In this document: in pieces, positions 7,030-50,224 of the stretch
How the letters are laid out: every line of letters begins with the position of its first letter
Numbering within the stretch: position 1 is the first letter of the stretch
NCBI RefSeq assembly: GCF_964204645.1
Contig: NW_027437471.1
Location: 5,463 to 69,462, forward strand
Origin: Tubulanus polymorphus
Taxonomy: Eukaryota > Animalia > Nemertea
Direction: 5' to 3'
DNA: 64,000 nt
The notes under the pieces: generated by a model
The model's input: only the letters and a program-made list of their open reading frames with translations
What the model was told of the DNA's origin: nothing
Database searches by the model: none
Made by a program: the position numbers and the translations under genes

Positions 7030-7468
<439 letters not shown>

Positions 7469-23844: not shown

Positions 23845-23975
23845 CGATACGATACGATACGATACGATACGATACGATACGATACGATACGATACGATAC
23901 GATACGATACGATACGATACGATACGATACGATACGATACGATACGATACGATACGATACGATACGATACGATAC
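23845..23975 (+). repeat. (GATAC)n microsatellite
   Basis: Pure pentamer tract. Confidence 0.98.
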
Positions 23976-34123: not shown

Positions 34124-34311
34124 TTACATACACGTTACGGTCACCTACCACAGCACAAGAAGAATATGGTAATAGCCGGTGGTGTAACTGCGTCTGTTAT
34201 CGTAGCGCCAGTTGTCGCTAGTTTAGCCGTTGGTATCGGTGTACCGATATTATTGGCGTATGTTTACGGCGTGGTACCGATATCGCTGTGTCGCAGCGGT
34301 GGTTGCGGCGT
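34124..34311 (+). pseudogene. RNF19: Second copy of the RNF19-like exon, truncated by telomere addition
   Basis: Near-identical to 28163-28351 up to GGTTGCGGCGT, then switches to TAGGG repeats. Confidence 0.9.
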
Positions 34312-34359
34312 TAGGGTTAGGGGTTAGGGTTAGGGTTAGGGGTTAGGGTTAGGGTTAGG
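34311..34359 (+). repeat. Telomeric repeat tract (TTAGGG with two TTAGGGG variants)
   Basis: ttaggg ttagggg ttaggg ttaggg ttagggg ttaggg ttaggg ttagg. Confidence 0.95.
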
Positions 34360-34937
34360 TTTAGAGATAGAGGTTAGGGGACCAAACCGAAGGTTTGGAG
34401 ACCCCACTAGTGCACGGGCAGCGGGTTATCCCTGTAAAAAAGTAGTGAGAGTTAATTGTTGTAGTGAGGCGGTCTACGGGACGTTCATGCCTCGGGGCGT
34501 GTTCGTGTCGAGTCGTCGTATCCAGTCTTGTTCGGCTGCTTCGCGGATCGGTCTCGTGGAGCCTGGTAGGTGTTGGAGACCGTACACCCGAAAGTGTTCG
34601 CGGGTGTGGTCGACTTGGTTGAAGTGGTCCGAGACTGGAGTCGAATTCTTCGTTCTGATGCGTGAGACGTGATGAGTGACGCGTTCTCGTAGAGACATTC
34701 CGGTTTGGCCGACGTACAGCATGTTGCACTTGGTGCATTCGATGCAGTATACAATTTCACGGGTCGCGCAATTAATTGTGCTGCGGATCGCGTGCATTTT
34801 GTTGTGGCTGCGGCAAACGGTTGTTTCTCGGACGAGTGGACACGTACGACATCTCGGTGTTCTGCATTTCTCGGTGCCTCGACGTCGGGTTGACGGAGTT
34901 CTTTGAGTAGACCTGGAAATAGAAGAATTGGAAACAA
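34353..34937 (-). mobile_element. 5'-truncated Penelope-like element fragment (GIY-YIG region + 3' end), flanked by telomeric repeats on both sides
   Basis: Matches 34951-35535 (offset 598). Begins at GGTTAGG shared with the preceding telomere tract and ends at ...GAAACAA followed by GGGTTAGGGTTAG. Encodes the 107-aa GIY-YIG C-terminus (34474-34797). Confidence 0.95.
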
Positions 34938-34957
34938 GGGTTAGGGTTAGGGTTAGG
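34938..34957 (+). repeat. Short telomeric spacer between truncated and full PLE copies
   Basis: gggttagggttagggttagg, not present at the equivalent position of the full element. Confidence 0.9.
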
Positions 34958-35071
34958 TTTAGAGATAGAGGTTAGGGGACCAAACCGAAGGTTTGGAGAC
35001 CCCACTAGTGCACGGGCAGCGGGTTATCCCTGTAAAAAAGTAGTGAGAGTTAATTGTTGTAGTGAGGCGGT

Positions 35072-37531
35072 CTACGGGACGTTCATGCCTCGGGGCGTGT
35101 TCGTGTCGAGTCGTCGTATCCAGTCTTGTTCGGCTGCTTCGCGGATCGGTCTCGTGGAGCCTGGTAGGTGTTGGAGACCGTACACCCGAAAGTGTTCGCG
35201 GGTGTGGTCGACTTGGTTGAAGTGGTCCGAGACTGGAGTCGAATTCTTCGTTCTGATGCGTGAGACGTGATGAGTGACGCGTTCTCGTAGAGACATTCCG
35301 GTTTGGCCGACGTACAGCATGTTGCACTTGGTGCATTCGATGCAGTATACAATTTCACGGGTCGCGCAATTAATTGTGCTGCGGATCGCGTGCATTTTGT
35401 TGTGGCTGCGGCAAACGGTTGTTTCTCGGACGAGTGGACACGTACGACATCTCGGTGTTCTGCATTTCTCGGTGCCTCGACGTCGGGTTGACGGAGTTCT
35501 TTGAGTAGACCTGGAAATAGAAGAATTGGAAACAACGGAAGTATTTCTGTTACGATGCGGTGAAGAGGGGACTCGGGGAGGGGGTGGCTCCGTGGGTTTG
35601 AGCTGCGACGAAGTTAGGAGATCTTTGAGACTCTTGTGCTTGGTGTAGGCGGTGACCGTGGTTACCTCGTCAGACCGGCCGGTGGCCGTAGCCAGTTCCG
35701 TAAATCTGGTTCGGATGTTACGGGCTAGGGTTCGGTTGGCTTCGGAGTGAGGTAAGATAAGCGGTAAACGCTTTTTCGGCGGTTCGTCGGCCCGTTGTTG
35801 TTCTCGTAGATCTCGTTCGGCGTGGTGCCGTAGAGCTTGGCTTTTGATGTGTCGCAGTTCGCGGTCTTTGTAGCCACGACCTCTGAGTACTTTAAGGACG
35901 GTTCCGGACGCTGCGTGTAAGTCCGAATCGTTATTGCAGATGCGCCGGAACCGGAGAATTTGACTTTTAACTATACCGGAAAATGTGTGTTTAGGGTGAA
36001 ACGAGGATCGATGTAGTAATTGATGCGAATCGGTTGGTTTGAAGTAGACTTTGGTGTCTACTGTGCCACTTGTCTCGAATCGCGGGCCTTTGAAAGTGGT
36101 TACGTCCAGGAAGTTGACGCTGGTGTCGCTGATTTCGAACTTGAGTTTGATGGATCGGCTCACTGTTTGTAGGACGTCGATGAATTGCATCAACGTTTCG
36201 CGGCCGTGTTCCCAAACTATGTAGATGTCGTCGATGAACCGAGCGTATAGCGATGGTTGGAGTTCGCTTCTGGACAGACCTTCTTTTTCCCATTCGGCTA
36301 CAAAGATATTGGCATAAGAAGGAGCAAAACGCTTACCCATTGCGGTACCTTTTACCTGTAAATATGTGTTTTCGTTAAAGTTAAAGTCATTTTTCTTCAG
36401 GCTGATTTCGAGTAGTTTCAGTAGCTCGGCATCCGGGCGTCCCGGGTTCGGGTTATCTCGGAGAGCTTGTCGGATGCTGGCGATACCCTCTTCGTGGGGG
36501 ATGTTGGTGTAGAGCGAATCGATGTCCATGGTGACGAGTAACGCATCGGCGCTAAATTGTTTACCGGCCAAAATATCTAGAAAGTGGTTGGTATCTTTGA
36601 CGTACGACGGGTGACCGCGGGCGATCGGCTGCAAATAGTAGTCGATCCATTCCGAAATTTCGTAGGTTTCGGAGCCGCAGTCGGAGACGATCGGTCTCCC
36701 CGGCGGTACGCGATCGGGTACCGTCCACTTCTCGCGTTCTTTATGGATTTTGGGAAGCAGATAGAACTGCCTCTGTTTCGGATTATCGGGCGGTAATAGA
36801 TATTCGGCGGTTTTTAGCGGGATGATTTTTCGTCGAGCCATATTTTCGATGATTTCGCGAATTTCTTCCCCGGTCTGTTCGAAAATCGGTTGCTGCAGCG
36901 GCTGATAATACTCGAGATCGGCTAGTTGGCGCATGGCTTCGTGGACGTAGTCGTCGCGGTCCATGATAACCGTAGCGGAACCCTTATCGGCGGCTTTGAT
37001 GACAATATTAGTGTTGTCACGCAGCTGCTGGAGGGCTTCGCGTTCCTGTTTAGTGAGGTTATCATTTACGCGACGCGTATCCCTGGTTTGTTGAGCCAAT
37101 TCGTGCGCGTCGTTGCAGAACCCGGCGATTACTGGTTCTATTTCATCCGGAGCCCAACTGCTGGGCAGACGGAAACGCGGAGCCTCGCGGTCCGGTTTGT
37201 CTCGGAAGTGATGGTCGAGTTTCACTAGCCGGTTGAATCGGCACACTCCCTTGGTGCGCTCGGTCGCGGCGGCATCAGAACCGATTTTTGGAGTCGGGCA
37301 ATAAGTGAGGCCCTTTCGGAGTAGCTGATGTTGCGCCGGACTTAGGCGGAGTGAACGTGTGAGGTTGACCACCGGGCTCCCGAGAGCGGTGACCGGATCG
37401 CGTCGCGCTTGGTTTGGTGCCGGTTCTTCGTGTTCGTCGGACCTGGAAATGGAAGAAATCAGAGAAGCATTGGTTAATTCCGGTTGATTTAACTCACCAA
37501 TAGTGGACCCGTTGGTCTCACTAATACTTAG
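35072..37531 (-). CDS. PLE reverse transcriptase + C-terminal GIY-YIG endonuclease (ORF2, unit 1). Frame is open from the slippery site at 37531; the ORF track starts it at GTG 37372
   Basis: PLE RT motifs KAADKG, YLLPKIHK, GRPIVS, MDIDSLYTNI, GTAMGKRFAPSYANIF, RFIDD. Cys linker CRTPRCRTC (Neptune-like). GIY-YIG: IVYCIECTKC..YVGQT..LRERVTHH..DHF..REAAEQDWI..GMN. Confidence 0.95.
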   Translation of the reverse strand, partial: LSISETNGSTIGELNQPELTNASLISSISRSDEHEEPAPNQARRDPVTALGSPVVNLTRSLRLSPAQHQLLRKGLTYCPTPKIGSDAAATERTKGVCRFNRLVKLDHHFRDKPDREAPRFRLPSSWAPDEIEPVIAGFCNDAHELAQQTRDTRRVNDNLTKQEREALQQLRDNTNIVIKAADKGSATVIMDRDDYVHEAMRQLADLEYYQPLQQPIFEQTGEEIREIIENMARRKIIPLKTAEYLLPPDNPKQRQFYLLPKIHKEREKWTVPDRVPPGRPIVSDCGSETYEISEWIDYYLQPIARGHPSYVKDTNHFLDILAGKQFSADALLVTMDIDSLYTNIPHEEGIASIRQALRDNPNPGRPDAELLKLLEISLKKNDFNFNENTYLQVKGTAMGKRFAPSYANIFVAEWEKEGLSRSELQPSLYARFIDDIYIVWEHGRETLMQFIDVLQTVSRSIKLKFEISDTSVNFLDVTTFKGPRFETSGTVDTKVYFKPTDSHQLLHRSSFHPKHTFSGIVKSQILRFRRICNNDSDLHAASGTVLKVLRGRGYKDRELRHIKSQALRHHAERDLREQQRADEPPKKRLPLILPHSEANRTLARNIRTRFTELATATGRSDEVTTVTAYTKHKSLKDLLTSSQLKPTEPPPPRVPSSPHRNRNTSVVSNSSISRSTQRTPSTRRRGTEKCRTPRCRTCPLVRETTVCRSHNKMHAIRSTINCATREIVYCIECTKCNMLYVGQTGMSLRERVTHHVSRIRTKNSTPVSDHFNQVDHTREHFRVYGLQHLPGSTRPIREAAEQDWIRRLDTNTPRGMNVP

Positions 37532-37537
37532 TTTAAA
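37496..37537 (-). promoter_or_regulatory. -1 programmed ribosomal frameshift signal (U_UUA_AAC + 7-nt spacer + hairpin/pseudoknot); also at +6339, +12693, +19047 and +25401
   Basis: ORF1 ends GGT TTA AAC TAA. The -1 frame is open for 53 codons into ORF2. Stem UAGUG(A)GACC/GGUCCACUA follows, with ACCAA able to pair with the next UUGGU. Confidence 0.85.
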
Positions 37538-39084
37538 CCACTGAGCCAGTGGTCCAGCAGGGTGTTAGCTGTACCACGGTTCCAGTGGATCCCGTCTCCA
37601 ACAACTCTGAAGCGTCGATCATCGATGGGTGGTATCGCGGTGACGTCGTCGTTATTCTCGAGGAATTCGTTGAACTTCCGGGCGAACTGCTGGTGTTCGC
37701 GGGTCGTGTTGAGTTGAACGAAGTGGACGAACGAGTGCTGATACTTCTTGACTGCGGCGTTGATCAGGCGCTGTGTGGTCTTCTTGGCGGTCGCTTCGAA
37801 GTTGTTGTCGCGGTTGTTGATTCCGACGCTGATGATCACCGTATCCGGGCGATCTCGGCGCTCCGGTACAGCATCGATCAGGTCGGCGAGATGAGCTATC
37901 TTGCAGCCGGGGAAGCTCTCGATCTGGACGTCATCCGGACGGCGGCTTGATGTGATGTTACTCAGATTTGAGTCACCAATCACCAGAATGGGTCGCCGGG
38001 TTGGTGGCAGACTCCAATCCTGTTTCTTCCGACCCGTTTTCGGATGACGGCGAACTTCCTGGGGCGCCATCGGTCTCGGTGTTGGCGTCGGACTTCGCGC
38101 TGGCAGTAGGCGCCCTGGTGACCTGTAATGAGACGGAGAGCTGGAAAGAGAAGAAGAGAGAGACGGCGTCGGACTGCTGGTTGGTGCGGTCGGCGTTCTC
38201 TGCGGCGGCGGCGTCGGGTTTCGAGGCGGCGGCGTCGGACTTCTCGGTGGTGTCGGACTTCTTGGTGGCGGCGGCGGCGTCGGCATCGGACTTCTCGGTG
38301 GTGGCGCCATTCTGGTTGGTGGCGTCCTGGTGACATCCGCGTAGCTTCTCGGTGACCTGGAATCAGAAAAAGAAGGAGACGCTGTGGGCGCGGCGGGCGC
38401 GGCTGCGGTTGGTGCAGGCGTCCTCGGCGTCGCGGGCTTTCGAATCTTCCGGCTCGGTCTCGGCGGCGGACGAATCTTCGGCTCCGTGGGTGCCTCCTGG
38501 TGGTGTGACCTGAAATGAGAAGGGGAAGAAGGTGGGTTAGATAGGACATTTCTGAGTTTGTCAGACAGAGCCTGACCGCGGAATTTCGACCGCAAATCCA
38601 GCGCGATGTTGAAAAGCCGGATCGTTCCGGGGCTCAGACGGGAGCCGAAATTCCTCCGGGCCCATGTCAGGGCGACATCCTGTGCTGATAGACAGTCCGG
38701 CAGAGGATCACCCATTAGCTCAACAAATGTGGCAGCATAATGGATGGTCAGCTCTTTCGAAACTGTCTCCATCCAGACGTCCGCGGCAGCGTGCAGCTGC
38801 ACCGTTACTGCTTCGGTGCAAGCCGCCGGCCGCAGGAACATCTTCAGATGGTCCTTCTTCCTCCGAATCGCTTTCGGACCAGAGCTCAACTGGGCAAGGT
38901 GGTGCGCCACTTGAAGAGCTCTATAATACGTTTTCGGCGACATCCCGGGTTGCTGGTGTCGCTCAGGGCGTCCTCCGCCCTTGCTGGTCTTCTCAGCTGG
39001 TGGTCGTTTCTTCTTTCGAGTAGATCGCTCCATTGACAGATATTTCGGCGAGGTTGCCTTCGTCAGTGTCAGTGCAGGAATCAT
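37528..39084 (-). CDS. PLE ORF1: basic/helical N-terminus, Pro/Ser/Arg-rich linker, C-terminal SGNH/GDSL hydrolase (esterase) domain; likely start ATG at 39033
   Basis: SGNH blocks ILVIGDSNL (Ser), SFPG, SVGINN, DGIHW (Asp/His); RSPTPPP repeats. Confidence 0.9.
   Translation of the reverse strand: MIPALTLTKATSPKYLSMERSTRKKKRPPAEKTSKGGGRPERHQQPGMSPKTYYRALQVAHHLAQLSSGPKAIRRKKDHLKMFLRPAACTEAVTVQLHAAADVWMETVSKELTIHYAATFVELMGDPLPDCLSAQDVALTWARRNFGSRLSPGTIRLFNIALDLRSKFRGQALSDKLRNVLSNPPSSPSHFRSHHQEAPTEPKIRPPPRPSRKIRKPATPRTPAPTAAAPAAPTASPSFSDSRSPRSYADVTRTPPTRMAPPPRSPMPTPPPPPRSPTPPRSPTPPPRNPTPPPQRTPTAPTSSPTPSLSSSLSSSPSHYRSPGRLLPARSPTPTPRPMAPQEVRRHPKTGRKKQDWSLPPTRRPILVIGDSNLSNITSSRRPDDVQIESFPGCKIAHLADLIDAVPERRDRPDTVIISVGINNRDNNFEATAKKTTQRLINAAVKKYQHSFVHFVQLNTTREHQQFARKFNEFLENNDDVTAIPPIDDRRFRVVGDGIHWNRGTANTLLDHWLSGLN
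39031..39074 (-). ncRNA. Minimal type-I hammerhead ribozyme (unit 1)
   Basis: Minus strand CACUGACA-CUGACGA-AGGCAACCUCGCC-GAAA-UAUC^UGUCAAUG: CUGANGA and GAAA cores, stem II GGC/GCC, stem I CACUGACA/UGUCAAUG, AUC cleavage triplet, vestigial palindromic stem III (AUAU). Confidence 0.8.
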
Positions 39085-39115
39085 GCTGAACTAGGATTAG
39101 ACACGGGTTTTTATA
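39085..39115 (-). promoter_or_regulatory. Putative Pol II core promoter (TATAAAA 39115-39109; Inr-like TTCAGC ~28 nt downstream); repeated at 45463-45469, 51817-51823, 58171-58177
   Basis: Minus strand gcgtgTATAAAAacccgtgtctaatcctagttcagcATG, at the AT-rich to GC-rich transition just upstream of the hammerhead and ORF1. Confidence 0.6.
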
Positions 39116-41410
39116 CACGCAGCGCGCAACAAGTGAACAGTATTTGAGTTAGAAGTTAAGTGACCATATGAGACCTTGTGATCTAGACTAATTGTACTTC
39201 TGTGATCAAGCTAATAGACAAACTAGGGGTCTGACTAATTATGCCTTTGATCCAGAGTGACTAGAAAACAGCACTAATTATGGCCCTTGATCTAGCTGTT
39301 GAATAGTTTGCTTTGATGTATAGTTCTAAAGATCTAAAGAACGGCGTGTCTAATATAGAATTGAAAAGTTTATTTCGATATAACCTAATAAATACTCAAA
39401 GTGTTTTCTATAAAGAGAAATCTAGAATATGTATTATTAATATACGTGAACCGGAATGTTCGAAATATGTCCGAGTTCAGTTTCAAAATTGCTTAATTCC
39501 TAATTAGTTTAGACGCGTTAATTAGCGGTGCGCGGCCGAGGCGTATTCCGATATACGCGTGTTTACTAAATAGTCGTAAATGGTGAAATCCGGCTCTTAG
39601 TTAATCAAGTTTTCTCCGTATTCTAAAGCTTTAAAGAGCGGATTTTGAAATATCTACGCGGTATTCTACCGAAAATTGGATGAATTAGACAGCGCGGCGT
39701 CGGCGATTTAGTAGGAAGTTATAACCCGTAAGATCTAAATTACTGAGTGAGCGCGGGTGGTTAATTAGCCCTAATTATGGGTGACGAGTTTTGATAAAAA
39801 TGTCTTACTGATACGTCTGTTTTAATTCTAAGTTCTTAAATATAATTCTATTAGATAAACTACGCTTATTTAGAGTTATTAGGATCGAGTAAAGCTATGT
39901 GAACTTGAATATGTGACAAATATATTCAGACCGGAGCGCGGGTATTCAGTAAATCGGTTTAAGCTTGCGTAGTTTGAGTGGTTCAAAAACACTATGATCT
40001 CTTCTTTAATCCGAAGGTTGAAATATATACGTGATATAAAACTCTTTTTGAATCGGGAATATTGGGCTGTGTTCTTTGAAAAAAAACTGATGAGTTTGAA
40101 GGCGTCATAACTGCGATTTTGTATAGAATTGAGTCGGATAATTAGTCAAGAGGCGCGGGTGGCCGATCGGTCACTAATTATGAGTGACTTGTAAACAGTG
40201 ATTGATGTCCGTGGACTATTATTTATCCTATAAACTTCTTATACTTCTACAACCTATAGTGCGGTTTTTGAATATAGCTACTAATACTTTTGAGCGATCT
40301 CATTAGAATTGTTATCCGAAATAAACTGTCTGTTTTAGAGAAATTTGAAACTTGACACCCGGATCTATATAGAGTATGTTCCAAGAGTTGGCGCGTAGAT
40401 ACGATAATAGTTAATTAGGACGTAGCGGGTTAGGTCCCCGACCGAACGTTATAGATTAAACGGAGGTTAATTAGGGTGCCGCGGGTTCGAGTCCCGACCA
40501 GGCGCCGTTTAGTAATTGAATAGTTCTATTCTAAATGTTTTTTACCTATTCTGGATTCCTTTTAATTCTGAATCTTTGACGGATACAATAGTACTTTTCA
40601 GATGTTTCTACGATATAATCTTAGTGCCGACGCATATTTTCAAAATAAATAAGAGCGGTGGACTGGTTACCGGTATCTAACGCGGGGCACCGGCAACCCG
40701 TCAGTACTAGCGGTTAATTTCGGAGCGGCGGGTACGGTTCCCGAGTATTCTCCGGAGCTTAATTCGGGTGCCGCGGGTTCGAGTCCCGATCAGGCGCGCC
40801 GTTTTAGTAATTGAGTATATTCTTACCTATTCTAGATTCCCTTTCTTTCTAAATTTATAATAGATTAATTAATACTTTTCGGGTGTTTTTATGATATAAT
40901 CTCAGTGCTGACGCATATTTTCGAAATAGATAATAGCGGTGGACTGGTTACCGGTTTCTATCGTCCCGGGACAGGCAACCAGTCTGTACTAGCGGTTAGG
41001 GTTCGGTTCCCGATATCGCGCTTTTGTTTATTTTTCTAACTGTTTCTGATATTTGGTCTGTCTTCTTACTTACTGAATTTCGATTGAGTTTTCAAAGTAA
41101 AGCAGAGAGAACTAATTAAAAGATAAAAGGTTGATGATTCCTGTGGAGCTTGTGATCTTGGAGTTTGTTTTGTACTCTGTCTCTGAGCGGGTTTCTGCTT
41201 CAGGCGACGGAGGATGATTCTGCAAATAGATTGATGATTAATAATTAATCAGTTAAGATAATTTACGAGGGAAACCTGGCACGGGCTAAGGTTAGGTTTA
41301 GAGATAGAGGTTAGGGGACCAAACCGAAGGTTTGGAGACCCCACTAGTGCACGGGCAGCGGGTTATCCCTGTAAAAAAGTAGTGAGAGTTAATTGTTGTA
41401 GTGAGGCGGT

Positions 41411-43870
41411 CTACGGGACGTTCATGCCTCGGGGCGTGTTCGTGTCGAGTCGTCGTATCCAGTCTTGTTCGGCTGCTTCGCGGATCGGTCTCGTGGAGCC
41501 TGGTAGGTGTTGGAGACCGTACACCCGAAAGTGTTCGCGGGTGTGGTCGACTTGGTTGAAGTGGTCCGAGACTGGAGTCGAATTCTTCGTTCTGATGCGT
41601 GAGACGTGATGAGTGACGCGTTCTCGTAGAGACATTCCGGTTTGGCCGACGTACAGCATGTTGCACTTGGTGCATTCGATGCAGTATACAATTTCACGGG
41701 TCGCGCAATTAATTGTGCTGCGGATCGCGTGCATTTTGTTGTGGCTGCGGCAAACGGTTGTTTCTCGGACGAGTGGACACGTACGACATCTCGGTGTTCT
41801 GCATTTCTCGGTGCCTCGACGTCGGGTTGACGGAGTTCTTTGAGTAGACCTGGAAATAGAAGAATTGGAAACAACGGAAGTATTTCTGTTACGATGCGGT
41901 GAAGAGGGGACTCGGGGAGGGGGTGGCTCCGTGGGTTTGAGCTGCGACGAAGTTAGGAGATCTTTGAGACTCTTGTGCTTGGTGTAGGCGGTGACCGTGG
42001 TTACCTCGTCAGACCGGCCGGTGGCCGTAGCCAGTTCCGTAAATCTGGTTCGGATGTTACGGGCTAGGGTTCGGTTGGCTTCGGAGTGAGGTAAGATAAG
42101 CGGTAAACGCTTTTTCGGCGGTTCGTCGGCCCGTTGTTGTTCTCGTAGATCTCGTTCGGCGTGGTGCCGTAGAGCTTGGCTTTTGATGTGTCGCAGTTCG
42201 CGGTCTTTGTAGCCACGACCTCTGAGTACTTTAAGGACGGTTCCGGACGCTGCGTGTAAGTCCGAATCGTTATTGCAGATGCGCCGGAACCGGAGAATTT
42301 GACTTTTAACTATACCGGAAAATGTGTGTTTAGGGTGAAACGAGGATCGATGTAGTAATTGATGCGAATCGGTTGGTTTGAAGTAGACTTTGGTGTCTAC
42401 TGTGCCACTTGTCTCGAATCGCGGGCCTTTGAAAGTGGTTACGTCCAGGAAGTTGACGCTGGTGTCGCTGATTTCGAACTTGAGTTTGATGGATCGGCTC
42501 ACTGTTTGTAGGACGTCGATGAATTGCATCAACGTTTCGCGGCCGTGTTCCCAAACTATGTAGATGTCGTCGATGAACCGAGCGTATAGCGATGGTTGGA
42601 GTTCGCTTCTGGACAGACCTTCTTTTTCCCATTCGGCTACAAAGATATTGGCATAAGAAGGAGCAAAACGCTTACCCATTGCGGTACCTTTTACCTGTAA
42701 ATATGTGTTTTCGTTAAAGTTAAAGTCATTTTTCTTCAGGCTGATTTCGAGTAGTTTCAGCAGCTCGGCATCCGGGCGTCCCGGGTTCGGGTTATCTCGG
42801 AGAGCTTGTCGGATGCTGGCGATACCCTCTTCGTGGGGGATGTTGGTGTAGAGCGAATCGATGTCCATGGTGACGAGTAACGCATCGGCGCTAAATTGTT
42901 TACCGGCCAAAATATCTAGAAAGTGGTTGGTATCTTTGACGTACGACGGGTGACCGCGGGCGATCGGCTGCAAATAGTAGTCGATCCATTCCGAAATTTC
43001 GTAGGTTTCGGAGCCGCAGTCGGAGACGATCGGTCTCCCCGGCGGTACGCGATCGGGTATCGTCCACTTCTCGCGTTCTTTATGGATTTTGGGAAGCAGA
43101 TAGAACTGCCTCTGTTTCGGATTATCGGGCGGTAATAGATATTCGGCGGTTTTTAGCGGGATGATTTTTCGTCGAGCCATATTTTCGATGATTTCGCGAA
43201 TTTCTTCCCCGGTCTGTTCGAAGATCGGTTGCTGCAGCGGCTGATAATACTCGAGATCGGCTAGTTGGCGCATGGCTTCGTGGACGTAGTCGTCGCGGTC
43301 CATGATAACCGTAGCGGAACCCTTATCGGCGGCTTTGATGACAATATTAGTGTTGTCACGCAGCTGCTGGAGGGCTTCGCGTTCCTGTTTAGTGAGGTTA
43401 TCATTTACGCGACGCGTATCCCTGGTTTGTTGAGCCAATTCGTGCGCGTCGTTGCAGAACCCGGCGATTACTGGTTCTATTTCATCCGGAGCCCAACTGC
43501 TGGGCAGACGGAAACGCGGAGCCTCGCGGTCCGGTTTGTCTCGGAAGTGATGGTCGAGTTTCACTAGCCGGTTGAATCGGCACACTCCCTTGGTGCGCTC
43601 GGTCGCGGCGGCATCAGAACCGATTTTTGGAGTCGGGCAATAAGTGAGGCCCTTTCGGAGTAGCTGATGTTGCGCCGGACTTAGGCGGAGTGAACGTGTG
43701 AGGTTGACCACCGGGCTCCCGAGAGCGGTGACCGGATCGCGTCGCGCTTGGTTTGGTGCCGGTTCTTCGTGTTCGTCGGACCTGGAAATGGAAGAAATCA
43801 GAGAAGCATTGGTTAATTCCGGTTGATTTAACTCACCAATAGTGGACCCGTTGGTCTCACTAATACTTAG
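41411..43870 (-). CDS. PLE RT + GIY-YIG (ORF2, unit 2)
   Basis: Same protein with one V>I change relative to unit 1. Confidence 0.95.
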   Translation of the reverse strand, partial: LSISETNGSTIGELNQPELTNASLISSISRSDEHEEPAPNQARRDPVTALGSPVVNLTRSLRLSPAQHQLLRKGLTYCPTPKIGSDAAATERTKGVCRFNRLVKLDHHFRDKPDREAPRFRLPSSWAPDEIEPVIAGFCNDAHELAQQTRDTRRVNDNLTKQEREALQQLRDNTNIVIKAADKGSATVIMDRDDYVHEAMRQLADLEYYQPLQQPIFEQTGEEIREIIENMARRKIIPLKTAEYLLPPDNPKQRQFYLLPKIHKEREKWTIPDRVPPGRPIVSDCGSETYEISEWIDYYLQPIARGHPSYVKDTNHFLDILAGKQFSADALLVTMDIDSLYTNIPHEEGIASIRQALRDNPNPGRPDAELLKLLEISLKKNDFNFNENTYLQVKGTAMGKRFAPSYANIFVAEWEKEGLSRSELQPSLYARFIDDIYIVWEHGRETLMQFIDVLQTVSRSIKLKFEISDTSVNFLDVTTFKGPRFETSGTVDTKVYFKPTDSHQLLHRSSFHPKHTFSGIVKSQILRFRRICNNDSDLHAASGTVLKVLRGRGYKDRELRHIKSQALRHHAERDLREQQRADEPPKKRLPLILPHSEANRTLARNIRTRFTELATATGRSDEVTTVTAYTKHKSLKDLLTSSQLKPTEPPPPRVPSSPHRNRNTSVVSNSSISRSTQRTPSTRRRGTEKCRTPRCRTCPLVRETTVCRSHNKMHAIRSTINCATREIVYCIECTKCNMLYVGQTGMSLRERVTHHVSRIRTKNSTPVSDHFNQVDHTREHFRVYGLQHLPGSTRPIREAAEQDWIRRLDTNTPRGMNVP

Positions 43871-45438
43871 TTTAAACCACTGAGCCAGTGGTCCAGCAGG
43901 GTGTTAGCTGTACCACGGTTCCAGTGGATCCCGTCTCCAACAACTCTGAAGCGTCGATCATCGATGGGTGGTATCGCGGTGACGTCGTCGTGAATCTCGA
44001 GGAATTCGTTGAACTTCCGGGCGAACTGCTGGTGTTCGCGGGTCGTGTTGAGTTGAACGAAGTGGACGAACGAGTGCTGATACTTCTTGACTGCGGCGTT
44101 GATCAGGCGCTGTGTGGTCTTCTTGGCGGTCGCTTCGAAGTTGTTGTCGCGGTTGTTGATTCCGACGCTGATGATCACCGTATCCGGGCGATCTCGGCGC
44201 TCCGGTACAGCATCGATCAGGTCGGCGAGATGAGCTATCTTGCAGCCGGGGAAGCTCTCGATCTGGACGTCATCCGGACGGCGGCTTGATGTGATGTTAC
44301 TCAGATTTGAGTCACCAATCACCAGAATGGGTCGCCGGGTTGGTGGCAGACTCCAATCCTGTTTCTTCCGACCCGTATTCGGATGACGGCGAACTTCCTG
44401 GGGCGCCATCGGTCTCGGTGTAGGCGTCGGACTTCGCGCTGGCAGTAGGCGCCCTGGTGACCTGTAATGAGACGGAGAGCTGGAAAGAGAAGAAGAGAGA
44501 GACGGCGTCGGACTGCTGGTTGGTGCGGTCGGCGTTCTCTGCGGCGGCGGCGGCGGCGGCGGCGTCGGGTTTCGAGGCGGCGGCGTCGGACTTCTCGGTG
44601 GCGTCGGACTTCTTGGTGGCGGCGGCGGCGGCGTCGGCATCGGACTTCTCGGTGGTGGCGCCATTCTGGTTGGTGGCGTCCTGGTGACATCCGCGTAGCT
44701 TCTCGGTGACCTGGAATCAGAAAAAGAAGGAGGCGCTGTGGGCGCGGCGGGCGCGACTGCGGTTGGTGCAGGCGTCCTCGGCGTCGCGGGCTTTCGAATC
44801 TTCCGGCTCGGTCTCGGCGGCGGACGAATCTTCGGCTCCGTGGGTGCCTCCTGGTGGTGTGACCTGAAATGAGAAGGGGAAGAAGGTGGGTTAGATAGGA
44901 CATTTCTGAGTTTGTCAGACAGAGCCTGACCGCGGAATTTCGACCGCAAATCCAGCGCGATGTTGAAAAGCCGGATCGTTCCGGGGCTCAGACGGGAGCC
45001 GAAATTCCTCCGGGCCCATGTCAGGGCGACATCCTGTGCTGATAGACAGTCCGGCAGAGGATCACCCATTAGCTCAACAAATGTGGCAGCGTAATGGATG
45101 GTCAGCTCTTTCGAAACTGTCTCCATCCAGACGTCCGCGGCAGCGTGCAGCTGCACCGTTACTGCTTCGGTGCAAGCCGCCGGCCGCAGGAACATCTTCA
45201 GATGGTCCTTCTTCCTCCGAATCGCTTTCGGACCAGAGCTCAACTGGGCAAGGTGGTGCGCCACTTGAAGAGCTCTATAATAGGTTTTCGGCGACATCCC
45301 GGGTTGCTGGTGTCGCTCAGGGCGTCCTCCGCCCTTGCTGGTCTTCTCAGCTGGTGGTCGTTTCTTCTTTCGAGTAGATCGCTCCATTGACAGATATTTC
45401 GGCGAGGTTGCCTTCGTCAGTGTCAGTGCAGGAATCAT
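43867..45438 (-). CDS. PLE ORF1 SGNH esterase (unit 2)
   Basis: 523 aa; 5 more prolines than unit 1. Confidence 0.9.
   Translation of the reverse strand: MIPALTLTKATSPKYLSMERSTRKKKRPPAEKTSKGGGRPERHQQPGMSPKTYYRALQVAHHLAQLSSGPKAIRRKKDHLKMFLRPAACTEAVTVQLHAAADVWMETVSKELTIHYAATFVELMGDPLPDCLSAQDVALTWARRNFGSRLSPGTIRLFNIALDLRSKFRGQALSDKLRNVLSNPPSSPSHFRSHHQEAPTEPKIRPPPRPSRKIRKPATPRTPAPTAVAPAAPTAPPSFSDSRSPRSYADVTRTPPTRMAPPPRSPMPTPPPPPPRSPTPPRSPTPPPRNPTPPPPPPPQRTPTAPTSSPTPSLSSSLSSSPSHYRSPGRLLPARSPTPTPRPMAPQEVRRHPNTGRKKQDWSLPPTRRPILVIGDSNLSNITSSRRPDDVQIESFPGCKIAHLADLIDAVPERRDRPDTVIISVGINNRDNNFEATAKKTTQRLINAAVKKYQHSFVHFVQLNTTREHQQFARKFNEFLEIHDDVTAIPPIDDRRFRVVGDGIHWNRGTANTLLDHWLSGLN
45385..45428 (-). ncRNA. 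Minimal hammerhead ribozyme (unit 2)
   Basis: Same sequence as 39031-39074. Confidence 0.8.
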
Positions 45439-47764
45439 GCTGAACTAGGATTAGACACGGGTTTTTATACACGCAGCGCGCAACAAGTGAACAGTATTCG
45501 AGTTAGAAGTTAAGTGACCATATGAGACCTTGTGATCTAGACTAATTGTACTTCTGTGATCAAGCTAATAGACAAACTAGGGGTCTGACTAATTATGCCT
45601 TTGATCCAGAGTGACTAGAAAACAGCACTAATTATGGCCCTTGATCTAGCTGTTGAATAGTTTGCTTTGATGTATAGTTCTAAAGATCTAAAGAACGGCG
45701 TGTCTAATATAGAATTGAAAAGTTTATTTCGATATAACCTAATAAATACTCAAAGTGTTTTCTATAAAGAGAAATCTAGAATATGTATTATTAATATACG
45801 TGAACCGGAATGTTCGAAATATGTCCGAGTTCAGTTTCAAAATTGCTTAATTCCTAATTAGTTTAGACGCGTTAATTAGCGGTGCGCGGCCGAGGCGTAT
45901 TCCGATATACGCGTGTTTACTAAATAGTCGTAAATGGTGAAATCCGGTTCTTAGTTAATCAAGTTTTCTCCGTATTCTAAAGCTTTTAAGAGCGGATTTT
46001 GAAATATCTACGCGGTATTCTACCGAAAATTGGATGAATTAGACAGCGCGGCGTCGGCGATTTAGTAGGAAGTTATAACCCGTAAGATCTAAATTACTGA
46101 GTGAGCGCGGGTGGTTAATTAGCCCTAATTATGGGTGACGAGTTTTGATAGAAATGTCTTACTAATACGTCTGTTTTAATTCTAAGTTCTTAAATATAAT
46201 TCTATTAGATAAACTACGCTTATTTAGAGTTATTAGGATCGAGTAAAGCTATGTGAACTTGAACATGTGACAAATATATTCAGACCGGAGCGCGGGTATT
46301 CAGTAAATCGGTTTAAGCTTGCGTAGTTTGAGTGGTTCAAAAACACTATGATCTCTTCTTTAATCCGAAGGTTGAAATATATACGGGATATAAAACTCTT
46401 TTTGAATCGGGAATATTGGGCTGTGTTCTTTGAGAAAAACCGATGAGTTTGAAGGCGTCGTAACTGCGATTTTGTATAGAATTGAGTCGGATAATTAGTC
46501 AAGAGGCGCAGGTGGCCGATCGGTCACTAATTATGAGTGACTTGTAAACAGTGATTGATGTCCGTGGACTATTATTTATCCTATAAACTTCTTATACTTC
46601 TACAACCTATAGTGCGGTTTTTGAATATAGCTATTAATACTTTTGAGCGATCTCATTAGAATTGTTATCCGAAAATAAACTGTCTGTTTTAGAGAAATTT
46701 GAAACTTGACACCCGGATCTATATAGAGTATGTTCCAAGAGTTGGCGCGTAGATACGATAATAGTTAATTAGGACGTAGCGGGTTAGGTCCCCGACCGAA
46801 CGTTATAGATTAAACGGAGGTTAATTAGGGTGCCGCGGGTTCGAGTCCCGACCAGGCGCCGTTTAGTAATTGAATAGTTCTATTCTAAATGTTTTTTACC
46901 TATTCTGGATTCCTTTTAATTCTGAATCTTTGACGGATACAATAGTACTTTTCAGATGTTTCTACGATATAATCTTAGTGCCGACGCATATTTTCAAAAT
47001 AAATAAGAGCGGTGGACTGGTTACCGGTATCTAACGCGGGGCACCGGCAACCCGTCAGTACTAGCGGTTAATTTCGGAGCGGCGGGTACGGTTCCCGAGT
47101 ATTCTCCGGAGCTTAATTCGGGTGCCGCGGGTTCGAGTCCCGATCAGGCGCGCCGTTTTAGTAATTGAGTATATTCTTACCTATTCTAGATTCCCTTTCT
47201 TTCTAAATTTATAATAGATTAATTAATACTTTTCGGGTGTTTCTATGATATAATCTCAGTGCTGACGCATATTTTCGAAATAGATAATAGCGGTGGACTG
47301 GTTACCGGTTTCTATCGTCCTGGGACAGGCAACCAGTCTGTACTAGCGGTTAGGGTTCGGTTCCCGATATCGCGCTTTTGTTTATTTTTCTAACTGTTTC
47401 TGATATTTGGTCTGTCTTCTTACTTACTGAATTTCGATTGAGTTTTCAAAGTAAAGCAGAGAGAACTAATTAAAAGATAAAAGGTTGATGATTCCTGTGG
47501 AGCTTGTGATCTTGGAGTTTGTTTTGTACTCTGTCTCTGAGCGGGTTTCTGCTTCAGGCGACGGAGGATGATTCTGCAAATAGATTGATGATTAATAATT
47601 AATCAGTTAAGATAATTTACGAGGGAAACCTGGCACGGGCTAAGGTTAGGTTTAGAGATAGAGGTTAGGGGACCAAACCGAAGGTTTGGAGACCCCACTA
47701 GTGCACGGGCAGCGGGTTATCCCTGTAAAAAAGTAGTGAGAGTTAATTGTTGTAGTGAGGCGGT

Positions 47765-50224
47765 CTACGGGACGTTCATGCCTCGGGGCGTGTTCGTGTC
47801 GAGTCGTCGTATCCAGTCTTGTTCGGCTGCTTCGCGGATCGGTCTCGTGGAGCCTGGTAGGTGTTGGAGACCGTACACCCGAAAGTGTTCGCGGGTGTGG
47901 TCGACTTGGTTGAAGTGGTCCGAGACTGGAGTCGAATTCTTCGTTCTGATGCGTGAGACGTGATGAGTGACGCGTTCTCGTAGAGACATTCCGGTTTGGC
48001 CGACGTACAGCATGTTGCACTTGGTGCATTCGATGCAGTATACAATTTCACGGGTCGCGCAATTAATTGTGCTGCGGATCGCGTGCATTTTGTTGTGGCT
48101 GCGGCAAACGGTTGTTTCTCGGACGAGTGGACACGTACGACATCTCGGTGTTCTGCATTTCTCGGTGCCTCGACGTCGGGTTGACGGAGTTCTTTGAGTA
48201 GACCTGGAAATAGAAGAATTGGAAACAACGGAAGTATTTCTGTTACGATGCGGTGAAGAGGGGACTCGGGGAGGGGGTGGCTCCGTGGGTTTGAGCTGCG
48301 ACGAAGTTAGGAGATCTTTGAGACTCTTGTGCTTGGTGTAGGCGGTGACCGTGGTTACCTCGTCAGACCGGCCGGTGGCCGTAGCCAGTTCCGTAAATCT
48401 GGTTCGGATGTTACGGGCTAGGGTTCGGTTGGCTTCGGAGTGAGGTAAGATAAGCGGTAAACGCTTTTTCGGCGGTTCGTCGGCCCGTTGTTGTTCTCGT
48501 AGATCTCGTTCGGCGTGGTGCCGTAGAGCTTGGCTTTTGATGTGTCGCAGTTCGCGGTCTTTGTAGCCACGACCTCTGAGTACTTTAAGGACGGTTCCGG
48601 ACGCTGCGTGTAAGTCCGAATCGTTATTGCAGATGCGCCGGAACCGGAGAATTTGACTTTTAACTATACCGGAAAATGTGTGTTTAGGGTGAAACGAGGA
48701 TCGATGTAGTAATTGATGCGAATCGGTTGGTTTGAAGTAGACTTTGGTGTCTACTGTGCCACTTGTCTCGAATCGCGGGCCTTTGAAAGTGGTTACGTCC
48801 AGGAAGTTGACGCTGGTGTCGCTGATTTCGAACTTGAGTTTGATGGATCGGCTCACTGTTTGTAGGACGTCGATGAATTGCATCAACGTTTCGCGGCCGT
48901 GTTCCCAAACTATGTAGATGTCGTCGATGAACCGAGCGTATAGCGATGGTTGGAGTTCGCTTCTGGACAGACCTTCTTTTTCCCATTCGGCTACAAAGAT
49001 ATTGGCATAAGAAGGAGCAAAACGCTTACCCATTGCGGTACCTTTTACCTGTAAATATGTGTTTTCGTTAAAGTTAAAGTCATTTTTCTTCAGGCTGATT
49101 TCGAGTAGTTTCAGCAGCTCGGCATCCGGGCGTCCCGGGTTCGGGTTATCTCGGAGAGCTTGTCGGATGCTGGCGATACCCTCTTCGTGGGGGATGTTGG
49201 TGTAGAGCGAATCGATGTCCATGGTGACGAGTAACGCATCGGCGCTAAATTGTTTACCGGCCAAAATATCTAGAAAGTGGTTGGTATCTTTGACGTACGA
49301 CGGGTGACCGCGGGCGATCGGCTGCAAATAGTAGTCGATCCATTCCGAAATTTCGTAGGTTTCGGAGCCGCAGTCGGAGACGATCGGTCTCCCCGGCGGT
49401 ACGCGATCGGGTATCGTCCACTTCTCGCGTTCTTTATGGATTTTGGGAAGCAGATAGAACTGCCTCTGTTTCGGATTATCGGGCGGTAATAGATATTCGG
49501 CGGTTTTTAGCGGGATGATTTTTCGTCGAGCCATATTTTCGATGATTTCGCGAATTTCTTCCCCGGTCTGTTCGAAGATCGGTTGCTGCAGCGGCTGATA
49601 ATACTCGAGATCGGCTAGTTGGCGCATGGCTTCGTGGACGTAGTCGTCGCGGTCCATGATAACCGTAGCGGAACCCTTATCGGCGGCTTTGATGACAATA
49701 TTAGTGTTGTCACGCAGCTGCTGGAGGGCTTCGCGTTCCTGTTTAGTGAGGTTATCATTTACGCGACGCGTATCCCTGGTTTGTTGAGCCAATTCGTGCG
49801 CGTCGTTGCAGAACCCGGCGATTACTGGTTCTATTTCATCCGGAGCCCAACTGCTGGGCAGACGGAAACGCGGAGCCTCGCGGTCCGGTTTGTCTCGGAA
49901 GTGATGGTCGAGTTTCACTAGCCGGTTGAATCGGCACACTCCCTTGGTGCGCTCGGTCGCGGCGGCATCAGAACCGATTTTTGGAGTCGGGCAATAAGTG
50001 AGGCCCTTTCGGAGTAGCTGATGTTGCGCCGGACTTAGGCGGAGTGAACGTGTGAGGTTGACCACCGGGCTCCCGAGAGCGGTGACCGGATCGCGCCGCG
50101 CTTGGTTTGGTGCCGGTTCTTCGTGTTCGTCGGACCTGGAAATGGAAGAAATCAGAGAAGCATTGGTTAATTCCGGTTGATTTAACTCACCAATAGTGGA
50201 CCCGTTGGTCTCACTAATACTTAG
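47765..50224 (-). CDS. PLE RT + GIY-YIG (ORF2, unit 3)
   Basis: Translation identical to unit 2. Confidence 0.95.
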   Translation of the reverse strand, partial: LSISETNGSTIGELNQPELTNASLISSISRSDEHEEPAPNQARRDPVTALGSPVVNLTRSLRLSPAQHQLLRKGLTYCPTPKIGSDAAATERTKGVCRFNRLVKLDHHFRDKPDREAPRFRLPSSWAPDEIEPVIAGFCNDAHELAQQTRDTRRVNDNLTKQEREALQQLRDNTNIVIKAADKGSATVIMDRDDYVHEAMRQLADLEYYQPLQQPIFEQTGEEIREIIENMARRKIIPLKTAEYLLPPDNPKQRQFYLLPKIHKEREKWTIPDRVPPGRPIVSDCGSETYEISEWIDYYLQPIARGHPSYVKDTNHFLDILAGKQFSADALLVTMDIDSLYTNIPHEEGIASIRQALRDNPNPGRPDAELLKLLEISLKKNDFNFNENTYLQVKGTAMGKRFAPSYANIFVAEWEKEGLSRSELQPSLYARFIDDIYIVWEHGRETLMQFIDVLQTVSRSIKLKFEISDTSVNFLDVTTFKGPRFETSGTVDTKVYFKPTDSHQLLHRSSFHPKHTFSGIVKSQILRFRRICNNDSDLHAASGTVLKVLRGRGYKDRELRHIKSQALRHHAERDLREQQRADEPPKKRLPLILPHSEANRTLARNIRTRFTELATATGRSDEVTTVTAYTKHKSLKDLLTSSQLKPTEPPPPRVPSSPHRNRNTSVVSNSSISRSTQRTPSTRRRGTEKCRTPRCRTCPLVRETTVCRSHNKMHAIRSTINCATREIVYCIECTKCNMLYVGQTGMSLRERVTHHVSRIRTKNSTPVSDHFNQVDHTREHFRVYGLQHLPGSTRPIREAAEQDWIRRLDTNTPRGMNVP

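Follow-up and report, generated by a model that had tools for sequence, protein, structure and literature searches.

Head-to-tail array of a telomere-attached Penelope-like element in Tubulanus polymorphus with a genomic unit offset from its predicted promoter

Penelope-like elements (PLEs) occur as tandem or partial-tandem copies, with the promoter and a hammerhead ribozyme within the pseudo-LTR (PMC8557442, PMC4209133). A ligated, ribozyme-cut circle was proposed for PLEs by Cervera and de la Pena in 2014 (PMC4209133), and multi-copy read-through RNA with internal initiation of reverse transcription was reported for one PLE by Frangieh et al. in 2024 (PMC11167929). Hammerhead retrozymes also carry tandem hammerhead motifs, and ligation of their unit-length RNA to circles was proposed as the origin of multimeric cDNA (PMC7761336). 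Retrozymes are, however, 150–1000 nt long, non-coding and non-autonomous, with circles shown experimentally, whereas the element described here is 6.35 kb long and codes for protein in two long ORFs.

The right half of the window (the whole 64-kb stretch of T. polymorphus DNA that was analyzed) is a head-to-tail PLE array on the minus strand with about 4.6 units, a count that covers the 64-kb window only, since the distal array end lies beyond it. TTAGGG repeats adjoin the 6.34–6.35-kb element at two independent starts within the window. The sequence GGTTAGGTTTAGAGATAGAGG is present six times on the plus strand (34353, 34951, 41290, 47644, 53998 and 60352); the copies at 34353 and 34951 are preceded by TTAGGG repeats, and the other four are internal to the array. 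The join sequence CTAAGGTTAGGTTTAG occurs exactly four times (41286, 47640, 53994 and 60348), while it was not found in any of 100 shuffles. The first-pass annotation had described these two telomere-joined starts and the seamless unit joins without telomere repeats, and both hold; the unit end that it placed at 41369 overshoots 80 nt into unit 2.

The array is preceded by a short telomere tract, (TTAGGG/TTAGGGG)n, at 34310–34359 on the plus strand, whose last GGTTAGG (34353–34359) is common to the element 3' end. Attached to this tract is U0 (34353–34936, minus strand), a 5'-truncated copy with the last ~580 nt of the element and the same sequence as U1 across its whole length. Three TTAGGG repeats (34937–34957, plus strand) separate U0 from U1, and the GGTTAGG at 34951–34957, which complements CCUAACC of the RNA, is the U1 cDNA start site. 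U1 is one full genomic unit of 6339 nt (34951–41289, minus strand), with the sense order spacer X, ORF1, ORF2 and 3' module. U2–U5 follow on the same strand (41290–64000), with three units of 6354 nt each (41290–47643, 47644–53997 and 53998–60351) and a fifth cut by the window end. Judged from the G-rich telomere strand, which runs rightward, the chromosome end is to the right of the window. A segmental duplication of ~13 kb lies in the left half of the window.

Only one SNP distinguishes U2–U5 among themselves across about 22 kb, whereas U1 differs from them by 26 substitutions and 4 indels (0.4%) scattered through ORFs and spacer. Since U1-type and U2-type differ in the spacer as well as in the ORFs, the spacer appears to be inherited together with the ORFs. 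The switch between the two sequence types maps to 40968–42760, an interval that includes the unit boundary and leaves out the ribozyme site. Despite this difference, the U1/U2 join is identical to the other joins. The block that spans it (41273–41303, minus strand), with CUCUAAACCUAACC followed across the boundary by UUAGCCCGUGCCAGGUU, is kept in L011, another organism's element, and a small stem, AACCU/AGGUU, is possible across the boundary.

ORF2 (35072–37372, minus strand) is open upstream to about 37566, overlapping the end of ORF1 in the −1 frame. Against Pfam, it matched RVT_1 with E = 1e-7 and GIY-YIG with E = 3e-4 (21.3 bits, slightly below the 22.6-bit cut-off). It has 3322 homologues, the best one with 97% identity and from T. 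polymorphus, and these carry the precomputed families PF28514, PF26215, PF00078 and PF01541. The translation contains the motifs AADKGSATV and FIDD, as in PLE/telomerase-related reverse transcriptases, and the GIY-YIG motif EIVYCIECTKCNMLYVGQT, in which a pair of cysteines lies between GIY and YIG. The linker CRTPRCRTC (CX4CX2C), which precedes the GIY motif, agrees with the CX2-5CxxC pattern of Neptune and Nematis. ORF2 encodes a reverse transcriptase (RT) with an apparently intact C-terminal GIY-YIG nuclease, which identifies the element as a PLE; this assignment and the likeness to Neptune/Nematis are based on motifs and profile matches. ORF1 (37528–39084, minus strand, ATG at 39084) codes for 518 aa, or 523 aa in U2–U5, with a proline-rich middle and a GDSL/SGNH-esterase-like C-terminus; exact-protein look-ups for ORF1 gave no match, and neither did a fragment search. 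The slippery heptamer U_UUA_AAC (37531–37537, minus strand) lies immediately 5' of the ORF1 stop and is a likely −1 frameshift site linking ORF1 to ORF2.

Downstream of the ORF2 stop at 35072 (minus strand) is the 3' module (34951–35071, minus strand), which contains the motif CCCGTGCA, a perfect hairpin, GGGG..CCAAACC-UUCG-GGUUUGG..CCCC (34975–35003, minus strand), and the telomere-complementary sequence CCCCUAACC...CUCUAAACCUAACC. The element 3' end is accordingly telomere-like (CCCCUAACC...CCUAACC), with two junctions to TTAGGG repeats. No hammerhead core was found in this 115-nt region, where the structure is a plain hairpin; the hammerhead is 4.1 kb upstream. The architecture of the module is kept in L002 and L004 with a different hairpin sequence, and both have (CCCTAA)n at the end, after the homologous 3' module. 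The GGTTAGG site is 115 nt past the ORF2 stop, as first proposed, and L001, an independent copy lying inside a T. polymorphus chromosome, has the same end, ...CTCTAAACCTAA, followed by unrelated AT-rich DNA. The position of the cDNA start, as read from the genomic junctions, is confirmed by this copy.

Spacer X (39085–41289, minus strand; 2.2 kb, 62% A+T) corresponds to the PLE pseudo-LTR. It has no ORF of at least 65 aa, and it holds two direct repeats of ~250 nt, the only GTAAGT of the unit (~41075) and an AATAAA at ~41031. The only sense-strand TATAAAA of the unit (39115–39109, minus strand) precedes the ORF1 ATG by 31 nt and is the predicted core promoter. A single TATAAAA is about the chance expectation in 2.2 kb of AT-rich DNA and is notable for its position only; the transcription start is predicted from this one TATA box. 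The mid-unit promoter of the first-pass annotation is retained in this form, as a prediction.

The same annotation had placed a ribozyme near 39.1 kb, and the motif was recovered by a descriptor as a minimal type-I hammerhead at 39034–39071 (minus strand) with a predicted cut between 39039 and 39038, the cut position of that annotation. It is formed by helix I (UGACA/UGUCA), the core CUGACGA, an extra A, helix II (GGC/GCC), GAAA, a palindromic UA and the cleavage site UC. The descriptor was composed after the candidate was seen, with features drawn from published PLE minimal hammerheads (an extra base between positions 9 and 10.1, a G10.1–C11.1 pair and a palindromic mini helix III); it gave one match per unit, on the sense strand only, with predicted cleavage after 39039, 45393, 51747 and 58101, and no match in 200 whole-window shuffles on both strands. 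Rfam gave no hammerhead match, 300-nt slices included, and a stricter hammerhead descriptor did not match the motif. In an unconstrained fold, helices I and II form and the core stays open (z = −2.4). The same layout is present upstream of ORF1 in L006, L007 and L011 with different paired sequences, and the predicted ribozyme corresponds to the minimal type-I hammerhead expected in a PLE pseudo-LTR.

The predicted promoter and hammerhead are ~2.2 kb (2.25 kb for the hammerhead) from the cDNA start point. The preferred reading, to which we give about an even chance, is that of a telomeric PLE array, primed by the telomere internally on a linear, longer-than-unit read-through RNA and showing the pseudo-LTR offset. 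The element's anatomy, the hammerhead motif, the joins and the conservation in relatives are read directly from sequence, while the transcription start, ribozyme activity and template form belong to the model. The 3' end of the telomeric G-strand would pair with CCUAACC of the RNA just downstream of the conserved hairpin and would prime cDNA synthesis, as proposed for nuclease-lacking telomeric PLEs. Since the cDNA would start 115 nt after ORF2, with the likely promoter and hammerhead 2.2 kb further, in the next unit, the genomic unit would be offset from the transcription unit. The template would most likely be a linear RNA that spans more than a single unit, arises by read-through of a tandem master copy and escapes cleavage by the weak, dimer-dependent hammerhead. 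Reverse transcription would begin at an internal site of this RNA.

Were the RNA to begin at about 39.09 kb, as the TATA box predicts, or at the ribozyme cut (39038), copying 39085–41289 would need a template longer than one unit. A 42-nt boundary-spanning block matches L011 with 86% identity (E = 2e-5), which suggests that the template RNA runs on past the cDNA start. L008, a distant relative, is likewise arranged in seamless tandem; its spacer measures 2.3 kb, and the spacer boundary abuts a microsatellite in one case and, without a seam, the next unit in the other. With the four identical joins and the co-inheritance of spacer and ORFs, these two observations favor a longer-than-unit template. 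Of the claim that the unit is permuted through copying from circular or concatemeric RNA, the longer-than-unit template is thus supported by the L011 block and the L008 tandem, while no circle-specific feature was found. The logic of offering a circle or a multimeric RNA is sound if the RNA begins at one of the two positions named above, and both were already published for PLEs (PMC4209133; PMC11167929).

Copying from a circle would proceed by hammerhead cleavage of multimeric RNA to 6.35-kb monomers, closure by a host ligase and repeated circling of the RT, and starting from the internal telomere-complementary site it would yield seamless multimers. The idea has been put forward for tandem PLEs (PMC4209133), and small hammerhead retrozymes are known to form circles (PMC7761336). 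The single hammerhead motif per unit, the seamless joins and the near-identity of U2–U5 fit this route. One circle, however, would give identical units, and since U1 carries 26 substitutions and 4 indels relative to U2–U5, a single circle cannot explain the whole array. Minimal hammerheads of PLEs cleave weakly and need a second copy close by, while here the copies are 6.35 kb apart; the known ribozyme circles span a few hundred bases rather than 6 kb. In addition, uncut RNA was the main substrate in the one PLE tested, with no reads ending at the cut site (PMC11167929), and a sequence feature specific to circles was not found in the window. It is quite improbable that this autonomous, protein-coding 6.35-kb PLE is copied at chromosome ends by rolling circle from hammerhead-processed, ligated RNA, which, if true, would mean that a full-size retrotransposon can live as retrozymes do and would account for PLE tandems generally. 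Amplification at the DNA level is also unlikely as the main explanation, though somewhat less so: RT would have made only a dimer, or U1 and one unit, and U2–U5 would have arisen by unequal sister-chromatid exchange or break-induced replication, or by collapse or expansion of a telomeric repeat in the assembly. The single SNP among U2–U5 against 0.4% for U1 is in favor, as are the exchange-prone nature of subtelomeres and the duplication in the left half of the window, and unequal exchange could account for the near-identity of U2–U5. It leaves unexplained the first spacer-to-3'-end join and the same join and architecture in L008 and L011, relatives from other samples. It adds to an RNA-based model rather than replacing one.

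A doubtful but more plausible alternative is that the unit is not permuted at all, with transcription starting at ~41289 and spacer X as a long 5' leader. The start would be driven by the 3' end of the upstream neighbor, as in Drosophila HeT-A, or from within the first 200 nt, the leader perhaps having a ~2-kb intron (GTAAGT at 41075 to AG at 39091), and arrays would grow as full-length cDNAs were added one after another to the chromosome end, or through jumps from the end of one template to the next. At its start the spacer reads UUAGCCC, which resembles a decayed telomere repeat and is what past contact of an RNA 5' end with telomere repeats at this point should leave. The U1-to-U2 switch includes the boundary but not the ribozyme site, terminal GG/CC microhomology accounts for the join, and the joins equally fit a unit-length RNA with the 5' end CCUUAGCCC. 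The only GTAAGT of the unit is matched by a good acceptor just 5' of the ATG, and the Penelope intron ends at helix I of its hammerhead (PMC4209133). In L003, the motif GTGCCAG is only ~75 nt upstream of ORF1, a hint that this motif may mark a 5' end, with the long spacer serving as leader. On the other hand, independent additions at the end would not usually produce four identical joins, all free of extra bases and of 5' truncation; the two remaining starts in the window do show truncation and telomere repeats. Neither a TATA box nor another start signal was seen near 41289, while the strongest TATA box adjoins ORF1, and a hammerhead 2.25 kb into the transcript would sever the leader.

The array resembles HeT-A/TART of Drosophila, which also stand head to tail on chromosome ends, the 3' end of each copy facing the centromere. 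Each HeT-A copy is transcribed from a promoter in the 3' end of its upstream neighbor, which shifts the transcription unit relative to the transposed one. HeT-A/TART are, however, non-LTR elements of the jockey clade that carry poly(A) tails and whose host lacks telomerase, and they have no ribozyme, GIY-YIG nuclease or telomere repeats, unlike the element here.

Closer in protein are Penelope/Poseidon (PAc of Anolis), Neptune and Nematis, with RT, a C-terminal GIY-YIG nuclease and its CCHH-type insert, as here, and in Neptune and Nematis also the CX2-5CxxC linker. Nuclease-containing PLEs share with this locus pseudo-LTR tandems, frequent 5' truncation (here, 4.6 units, truncated U0 and L001, and tandem L008) and a minimal type-I hammerhead beside the ORF start; their unit is also offset from the ORF, and reverse transcription is proposed to start within multi-copy RNA (PMC8557442, PMC4209133, PMC11167929). 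The cDNA of PAc starts ~110 nt downstream of the hammerhead, within the ORF, whereas here its start closely follows ORF2 and precedes the hammerhead by 2.25 kb. The element also departs from canonical members in its telomere-complementary start site and telomeric location, its extra ORF1 joined via a −1 frameshift site and its hammerhead helix II of 3 bp instead of 6–8 bp, with 7–8 bp the usual length in PLE hammerheads.

These departures, except the short helix, recall Athena, Coprina and Terminons, which attach to the G-rich telomere strand by 3' reverse-complement telomere repeats adjacent to an RNA fold. They line up head to tail on chromosome ends, some copies being separated by short stretches of telomere repeats, and they carry GDSL-esterase accessory ORFs as well as an ORF1 linked through a frameshift (PMC6431247, PMC8557442). 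Terminal telomere-like repeats as in Athena/Coprina are found here at two TTAGGG junctions and in L002 and L004. Athena/Coprina lack the nuclease, while GIY-YIG is fused to RT here, and their hammerhead is directly upstream of the terminal repeats, where this element has the plain hairpin; an interior copy (L001) and a nemertean host with TTAGGG repeats are further differences. The offset is the known pseudo-LTR habit of the PLE family, unusually clear here, and not a new replication mechanism. What looks new, judging from the genomic copies, is telomere attachment in the manner of nuclease-lacking PLEs by an element that is Neptune-like, contains the nuclease and has an esterase-like ORF1. 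Relatives from other samples are attached in the same way.

Since the telomere-repeat junction at a chromosome end marks the start of cDNA synthesis unambiguously, the array directly shows the copied unit to be 2.2 kb out of register with the unit of predicted promoter, candidate ribozyme and ORFs. The telomere tract, (TTAGGG/TTAGGGG)n at 34310–34359, has its G-rich strand on the plus strand, which puts the chromosome end on the right-hand side. To the right of the tract stands a 5'-truncated copy of about 580 nt, U0 (minus strand, ending at 34936), followed by three TTAGGG repeats (34937–34957) and the first full unit, U1 (34951–41289, minus strand, 6339 nt). After U1, the array continues head-to-tail on the minus strand with U2–U4, each 6354 nt long, and U5, which runs off the window end. 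In sense order, a unit consists of the spacer (39085–41289 in U1; 2.2 kb, 62% A+T, without any ORF of at least 65 aa), ORF1, ORF2 and a 3' region of 115 nt. A string search of the window found GGTTAGGTTTAGAGATAGAGG at all six unit starts. The seamless joins described in the first-pass annotation were recovered as four identical copies of CTAAGGTTAGGTTTAG, that between U1 and U2 included; this string occurs exactly four times in the window and in none of 100 shuffles. No copy of the unit or spacer was found in window positions 1–34345. The left subtelomeric DNA (1–24000) contains a segmental duplication of about 13 kb (for example, 1604–4230 and 14507–17298), an (ATC)146 microsatellite at 7030–7468, a minisatellite of 33-bp repeats (27 copies) at 21627–22532 and (ACGAT)26 at 23844–23975.

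Two sequence types are present in the array. U1 differs from U2–U5 by 26 substitutions and 4 indels, while a single SNP accounts for all variation among U2–U5. The spacer holds 14 of the substitutions and two 1-nt indels, and the ORFs hold 12 substitutions. The other differences lie in a GGC-rich repeat of ORF1 (proline-rich in sense), where U1 lacks 12 and 3 bases (38201–38270 vs. 44528–44680); both indels are in frame, giving 518 aa against 523 aa, and ORF1 and ORF2 are intact in every array copy. Substitution density is twofold lower in the ORFs than in the spacer (0.31% vs. 0.64%), consistent with recent activity under selection. Since the types differ in both spacer and ORFs, each of two sub-lineages has passed on its spacer along with its ORFs. 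The switch from one type to the other maps to 40968–42760, an interval with the unit boundary (41289/41290) inside and the ribozyme site outside, and the join between the unlike U1 and U2 is the same as those between like units.

The insertion had been proposed to begin at GGTTAGG, 115 nt past the ORF2 stop, and this holds in three independent copies with the same 3' terminus: two in the window, each joined to telomere repeats at its start, and L001, an interior copy in a T. polymorphus chromosome. The latter spans unit sense positions 3569–6345 and terminates in ...CUCUAAACCUAA, followed by unrelated AT-rich DNA without a spacer. Its 5' junction shows a 10-nt inverted duplication (GCGTTCGCGG...CCGCGAACG; about 10193–10222 of L001), and its 3' end (12990–13000) adjoins ACCC and then AT-rich DNA. 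These junctions suggest insertion by the nuclease with short telomere-like microhomology. The 3' region itself contains the motif CCCGTGCA, a perfect hairpin and the telomere-complementary CCCCUAACC...CCUAACC. In two relatives from other sequencing runs, L002 (61% ORF2 identity) and L004, a homologous 3' module leads into terminal (CCCTAA)n, with the hairpin stem kept and its sequence changed. The end shared by three copies and these telomeric ends confirm the insertion site and mark telomere attachment as a trait of the element's lineage. Apparent wobble-compatible pairing of UUAGCCC to the telomere strand was weighed as a sign of an extended primer-binding site and dismissed for lack of significance, since pairing survives all but one of the six possible transitions in CCCTAA. 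A further relative, L011, is a JGI metagenome contig whose host has a CCCTAAA-type telomere repeat. At 7915–8405, it carries a full copy of a Penelope-like element (PLE) followed by stacked 5'-truncated 3' ends with (CCCTAAA)n between them. The telomere-attaching habit thus recurs in a host whose telomere repeat differs, and its chromosome end is shared by two PLE families.

ORF1 and ORF2 were searched as separate sequences. ORF2 (766 aa from the first GTG) matches Pfam RVT_1 and, weakly, GIY-YIG, a domain layout of the Neptune/Nematis type described in PMC8557442. A word search with ORF2 gave 3322 homologues, the best of them 97% identical and annotated in the palaeonemertean Tubulanus polymorphus. 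This homologue sits among host genes within a 32-Mb chromosome. The window is therefore most likely a chromosome end of that ribbon worm, and the contig is not human. ORF1 gave no strong Pfam match. Its C-terminal third (37528–38100, minus strand) reads as GDSL/SGNH esterase-like, with the motifs VIGDSN, GINN and DGIHWN and a Lipase_GDSL_2 match at E = 0.013; a weak precomputed match to the GDSL esterase is also present in ORF1 relatives. Giant telomeric Terminons carry esterase ORFs as well (PMC6431247, PMC8557442). A word search with whole ORF1 returned distant relatives only, exact look-ups of both versions (518 and 523 aa) and a search with the N-terminal 200 aa returned nothing, and the more distant relatives have a NADAR-type domain (PF08719) in place of the esterase. 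Immediately 5' of the ORF1 stop (37528–37530) lies a coronavirus-type slippery heptamer, U_UUA_AAC (37537–37531, minus strand), and the ORF2 reading frame, −1 relative to ORF1, is open through both. A local hairpin begins 7 nt downstream of the heptamer, in a region with no fold advantage over shuffled sequence (z = 0.64). The GT-AG stretch of 55 nt that lies between the ORFs (37443–37497, minus strand) was considered as an intron and is unneeded, since the two ORFs overlap, with a −1 shift, at UUUAAAC.

The ribozyme site expected from the first-pass annotation coincides exactly with the predicted cleavage of a candidate hammerhead, between 39039 and 39038. According to PMC4209133, minimal hammerheads of PLEs typically have a helix I of 4–5 bp, carry one unpaired base that separates A9 from G10.1, conserve the G10.1-C11.1 pair and replace helix III proper with a palindromic stretch at 15.2–16.2. 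Every one of these features is shown by 39071–39034 (minus strand), which reads UGACA / CUGACGA / A / GGC-aaccuc-GCC / GAAA / UA / UC / UGUCA; helix II has 3 bp only. In an unconstrained fold, helices I and II form with the core open (z = −2.4). An initial strict descriptor without the extra base after A9 had no match and was superseded using PMC4209133; the resulting descriptor, composed after the candidate was seen, gave one match per unit, always on the sense strand, and none in 200 whole-window shuffles searched on both strands. Rfam, at the gathering threshold and at E <= 10, reported no ribozyme family in the whole unit or in slices of 300–700 nt, and no match to an HDV-like ribozyme at 39038. 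Since its models fit minimal PLE hammerheads poorly, this silence is not evidence of absence. With a relaxed descriptor, which itself imposes the pairing, motifs of the same layout were found 5' of ORF1 in three more distant relatives, at about 150 nt in L006, 140 nt in L007 and 900 nt in L011; all share the core, the extra A and G10.1-C11.1 with the window element but differ in their paired sequences.

The predicted core promoter is a TATAAAA, present once per unit in sense orientation (39115–39109), 31 nt upstream of the ORF1 ATG. One occurrence is about the chance expectation in an AT-rich spacer, and only its position stands out. A transcription start about 30 nt downstream would nearly coincide with the first ORF1 ATG; the second in-frame ATG (39033, five bases past the predicted ribozyme cut) may be used instead, which would place the hammerhead within the leader. 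In other PLEs, the hammerhead is found beside or across the ORF start (PMC11167929). Among splice-like signals, the sole GTAAGT of the unit is at 41075, 215 nt into the spacer, and a pyrimidine-rich AG acceptor is at 39091, 7 nt upstream of the ORF1 ATG. Introns are retained in PLEs. An AATAAA stands at about 41031. The spacer of every unit also has two direct repeats of about 250 nt, 80% identical (about 40461–40998). Each repeat, read on the plus strand, has a tRNA-like T-arm and acceptor with TTT(T) after them (about 40767–40804 and 40468–40500). ARAGORN found no tRNA, and the best Rfam match of these arms was tRNA-Sec (16.6 bits, E = 2.2). They may represent a tRNA-derived insertion that has decayed or, in antisense, a pol III unit.

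For an RNA starting near 39.09 kb, copying of the spacer would require a template longer than one unit. The unit had been interpreted as permuted relative to its transcript and therefore as copied from a circular or a concatemeric RNA. The observed offset and seamless joins are confirmed and the interpretation is partly supported; a single rolling circle for the whole array is ruled out by the substitutions and indels between U1 and U2–U5. A 42-nt block spanning the boundary is kept in L011 (86% identity, E = 2e-5), reading CUCUAAACCUAACC / CAGCGAGUGCCAGGUU there and CUCUAAACCUAACC / UUAGCCCGUGCCAGGUU in the window element. Since it is conserved on both sides of the boundary, the template RNA seems to continue beyond the cDNA start. 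A small stem, AACCU/AGGUU, could form across the boundary within the block. A metagenome scan with the block gave no match and missed even the L011 contig. In L008, a marine metagenome contig with about 48% ORF2 identity, a tandem dimer has a period of 6256 and a spacer of 2330 nt; the boundary ...CCCGTGCAAATAGGATATCGAAAA continues once into a (TGTA)n microsatellite and twice seamlessly into the spacer, the same pattern as in the window array.

Taken together, the sequence leans towards a linear read-through template, and a circular template of 6.35 kb is improbable. A unit-length RNA starting at the boundary is a possible alternative, in which the spacer would be a leader, perhaps with an intron of about 2 kb from the GTAAGT at 41075 to the AG at 39091; the TATAAAA beside ORF1 would place the start at the other end of the spacer. 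Units 2–5, nearly identical as they are, may have been multiplied by DNA-level exchange. The element bears on the cause of PLE tandems, the role of the hammerhead and the start of reverse transcription. In addition, a nuclease-containing PLE, like its relatives in at least three other samples, uses the telomere attachment hitherto ascribed to nuclease-lacking clades. The line separating dispersed PLEs that have the nuclease from telomeric PLEs that lack it is blurred as a result, which also bears on how PLEs relate to telomerase.

The pseudo-LTR/tandem architecture that defines PLEs (PMC8557442) is shared by the window element, and both of the templates proposed in the first-pass annotation have already been published as hypotheses for PLEs. 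In the proposal of Cervera and de la Pena (PMC4209133), PLE RNAs cut by the hammerhead may be ligated into circles that are templates for more-than-unit reverse transcription, which would explain head-to-tail copies. For a Poseidon element, Frangieh et al. (PMC11167929) reported that reverse transcription began at an internal AC-rich stem-loop and that uncut RNA was the main substrate, with no RNA-seq reads terminating at the cut site, and they proposed a multi-copy mRNA. A limited search found no description in the literature of a lineage such as the present one. The Athena and Coprina clades, which lack the nuclease, are described as attaching to telomeres through a 3' end of reverse-complement telomere repeats (PMC8557442, PMC6431247), whereas the window element has a fused, apparently intact nuclease and at least one interior copy. 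Its telomere-like motif is adjoined by a plain hairpin, not a hammerhead. Its cDNA begins 2.25 kb upstream of the hammerhead, whereas that of PAc, an Anolis PLE of the Penelope/Poseidon type, begins about 110 nt downstream of it. Thus, the phenomenon is already known for the PLE family, and the element itself is a new form of it.
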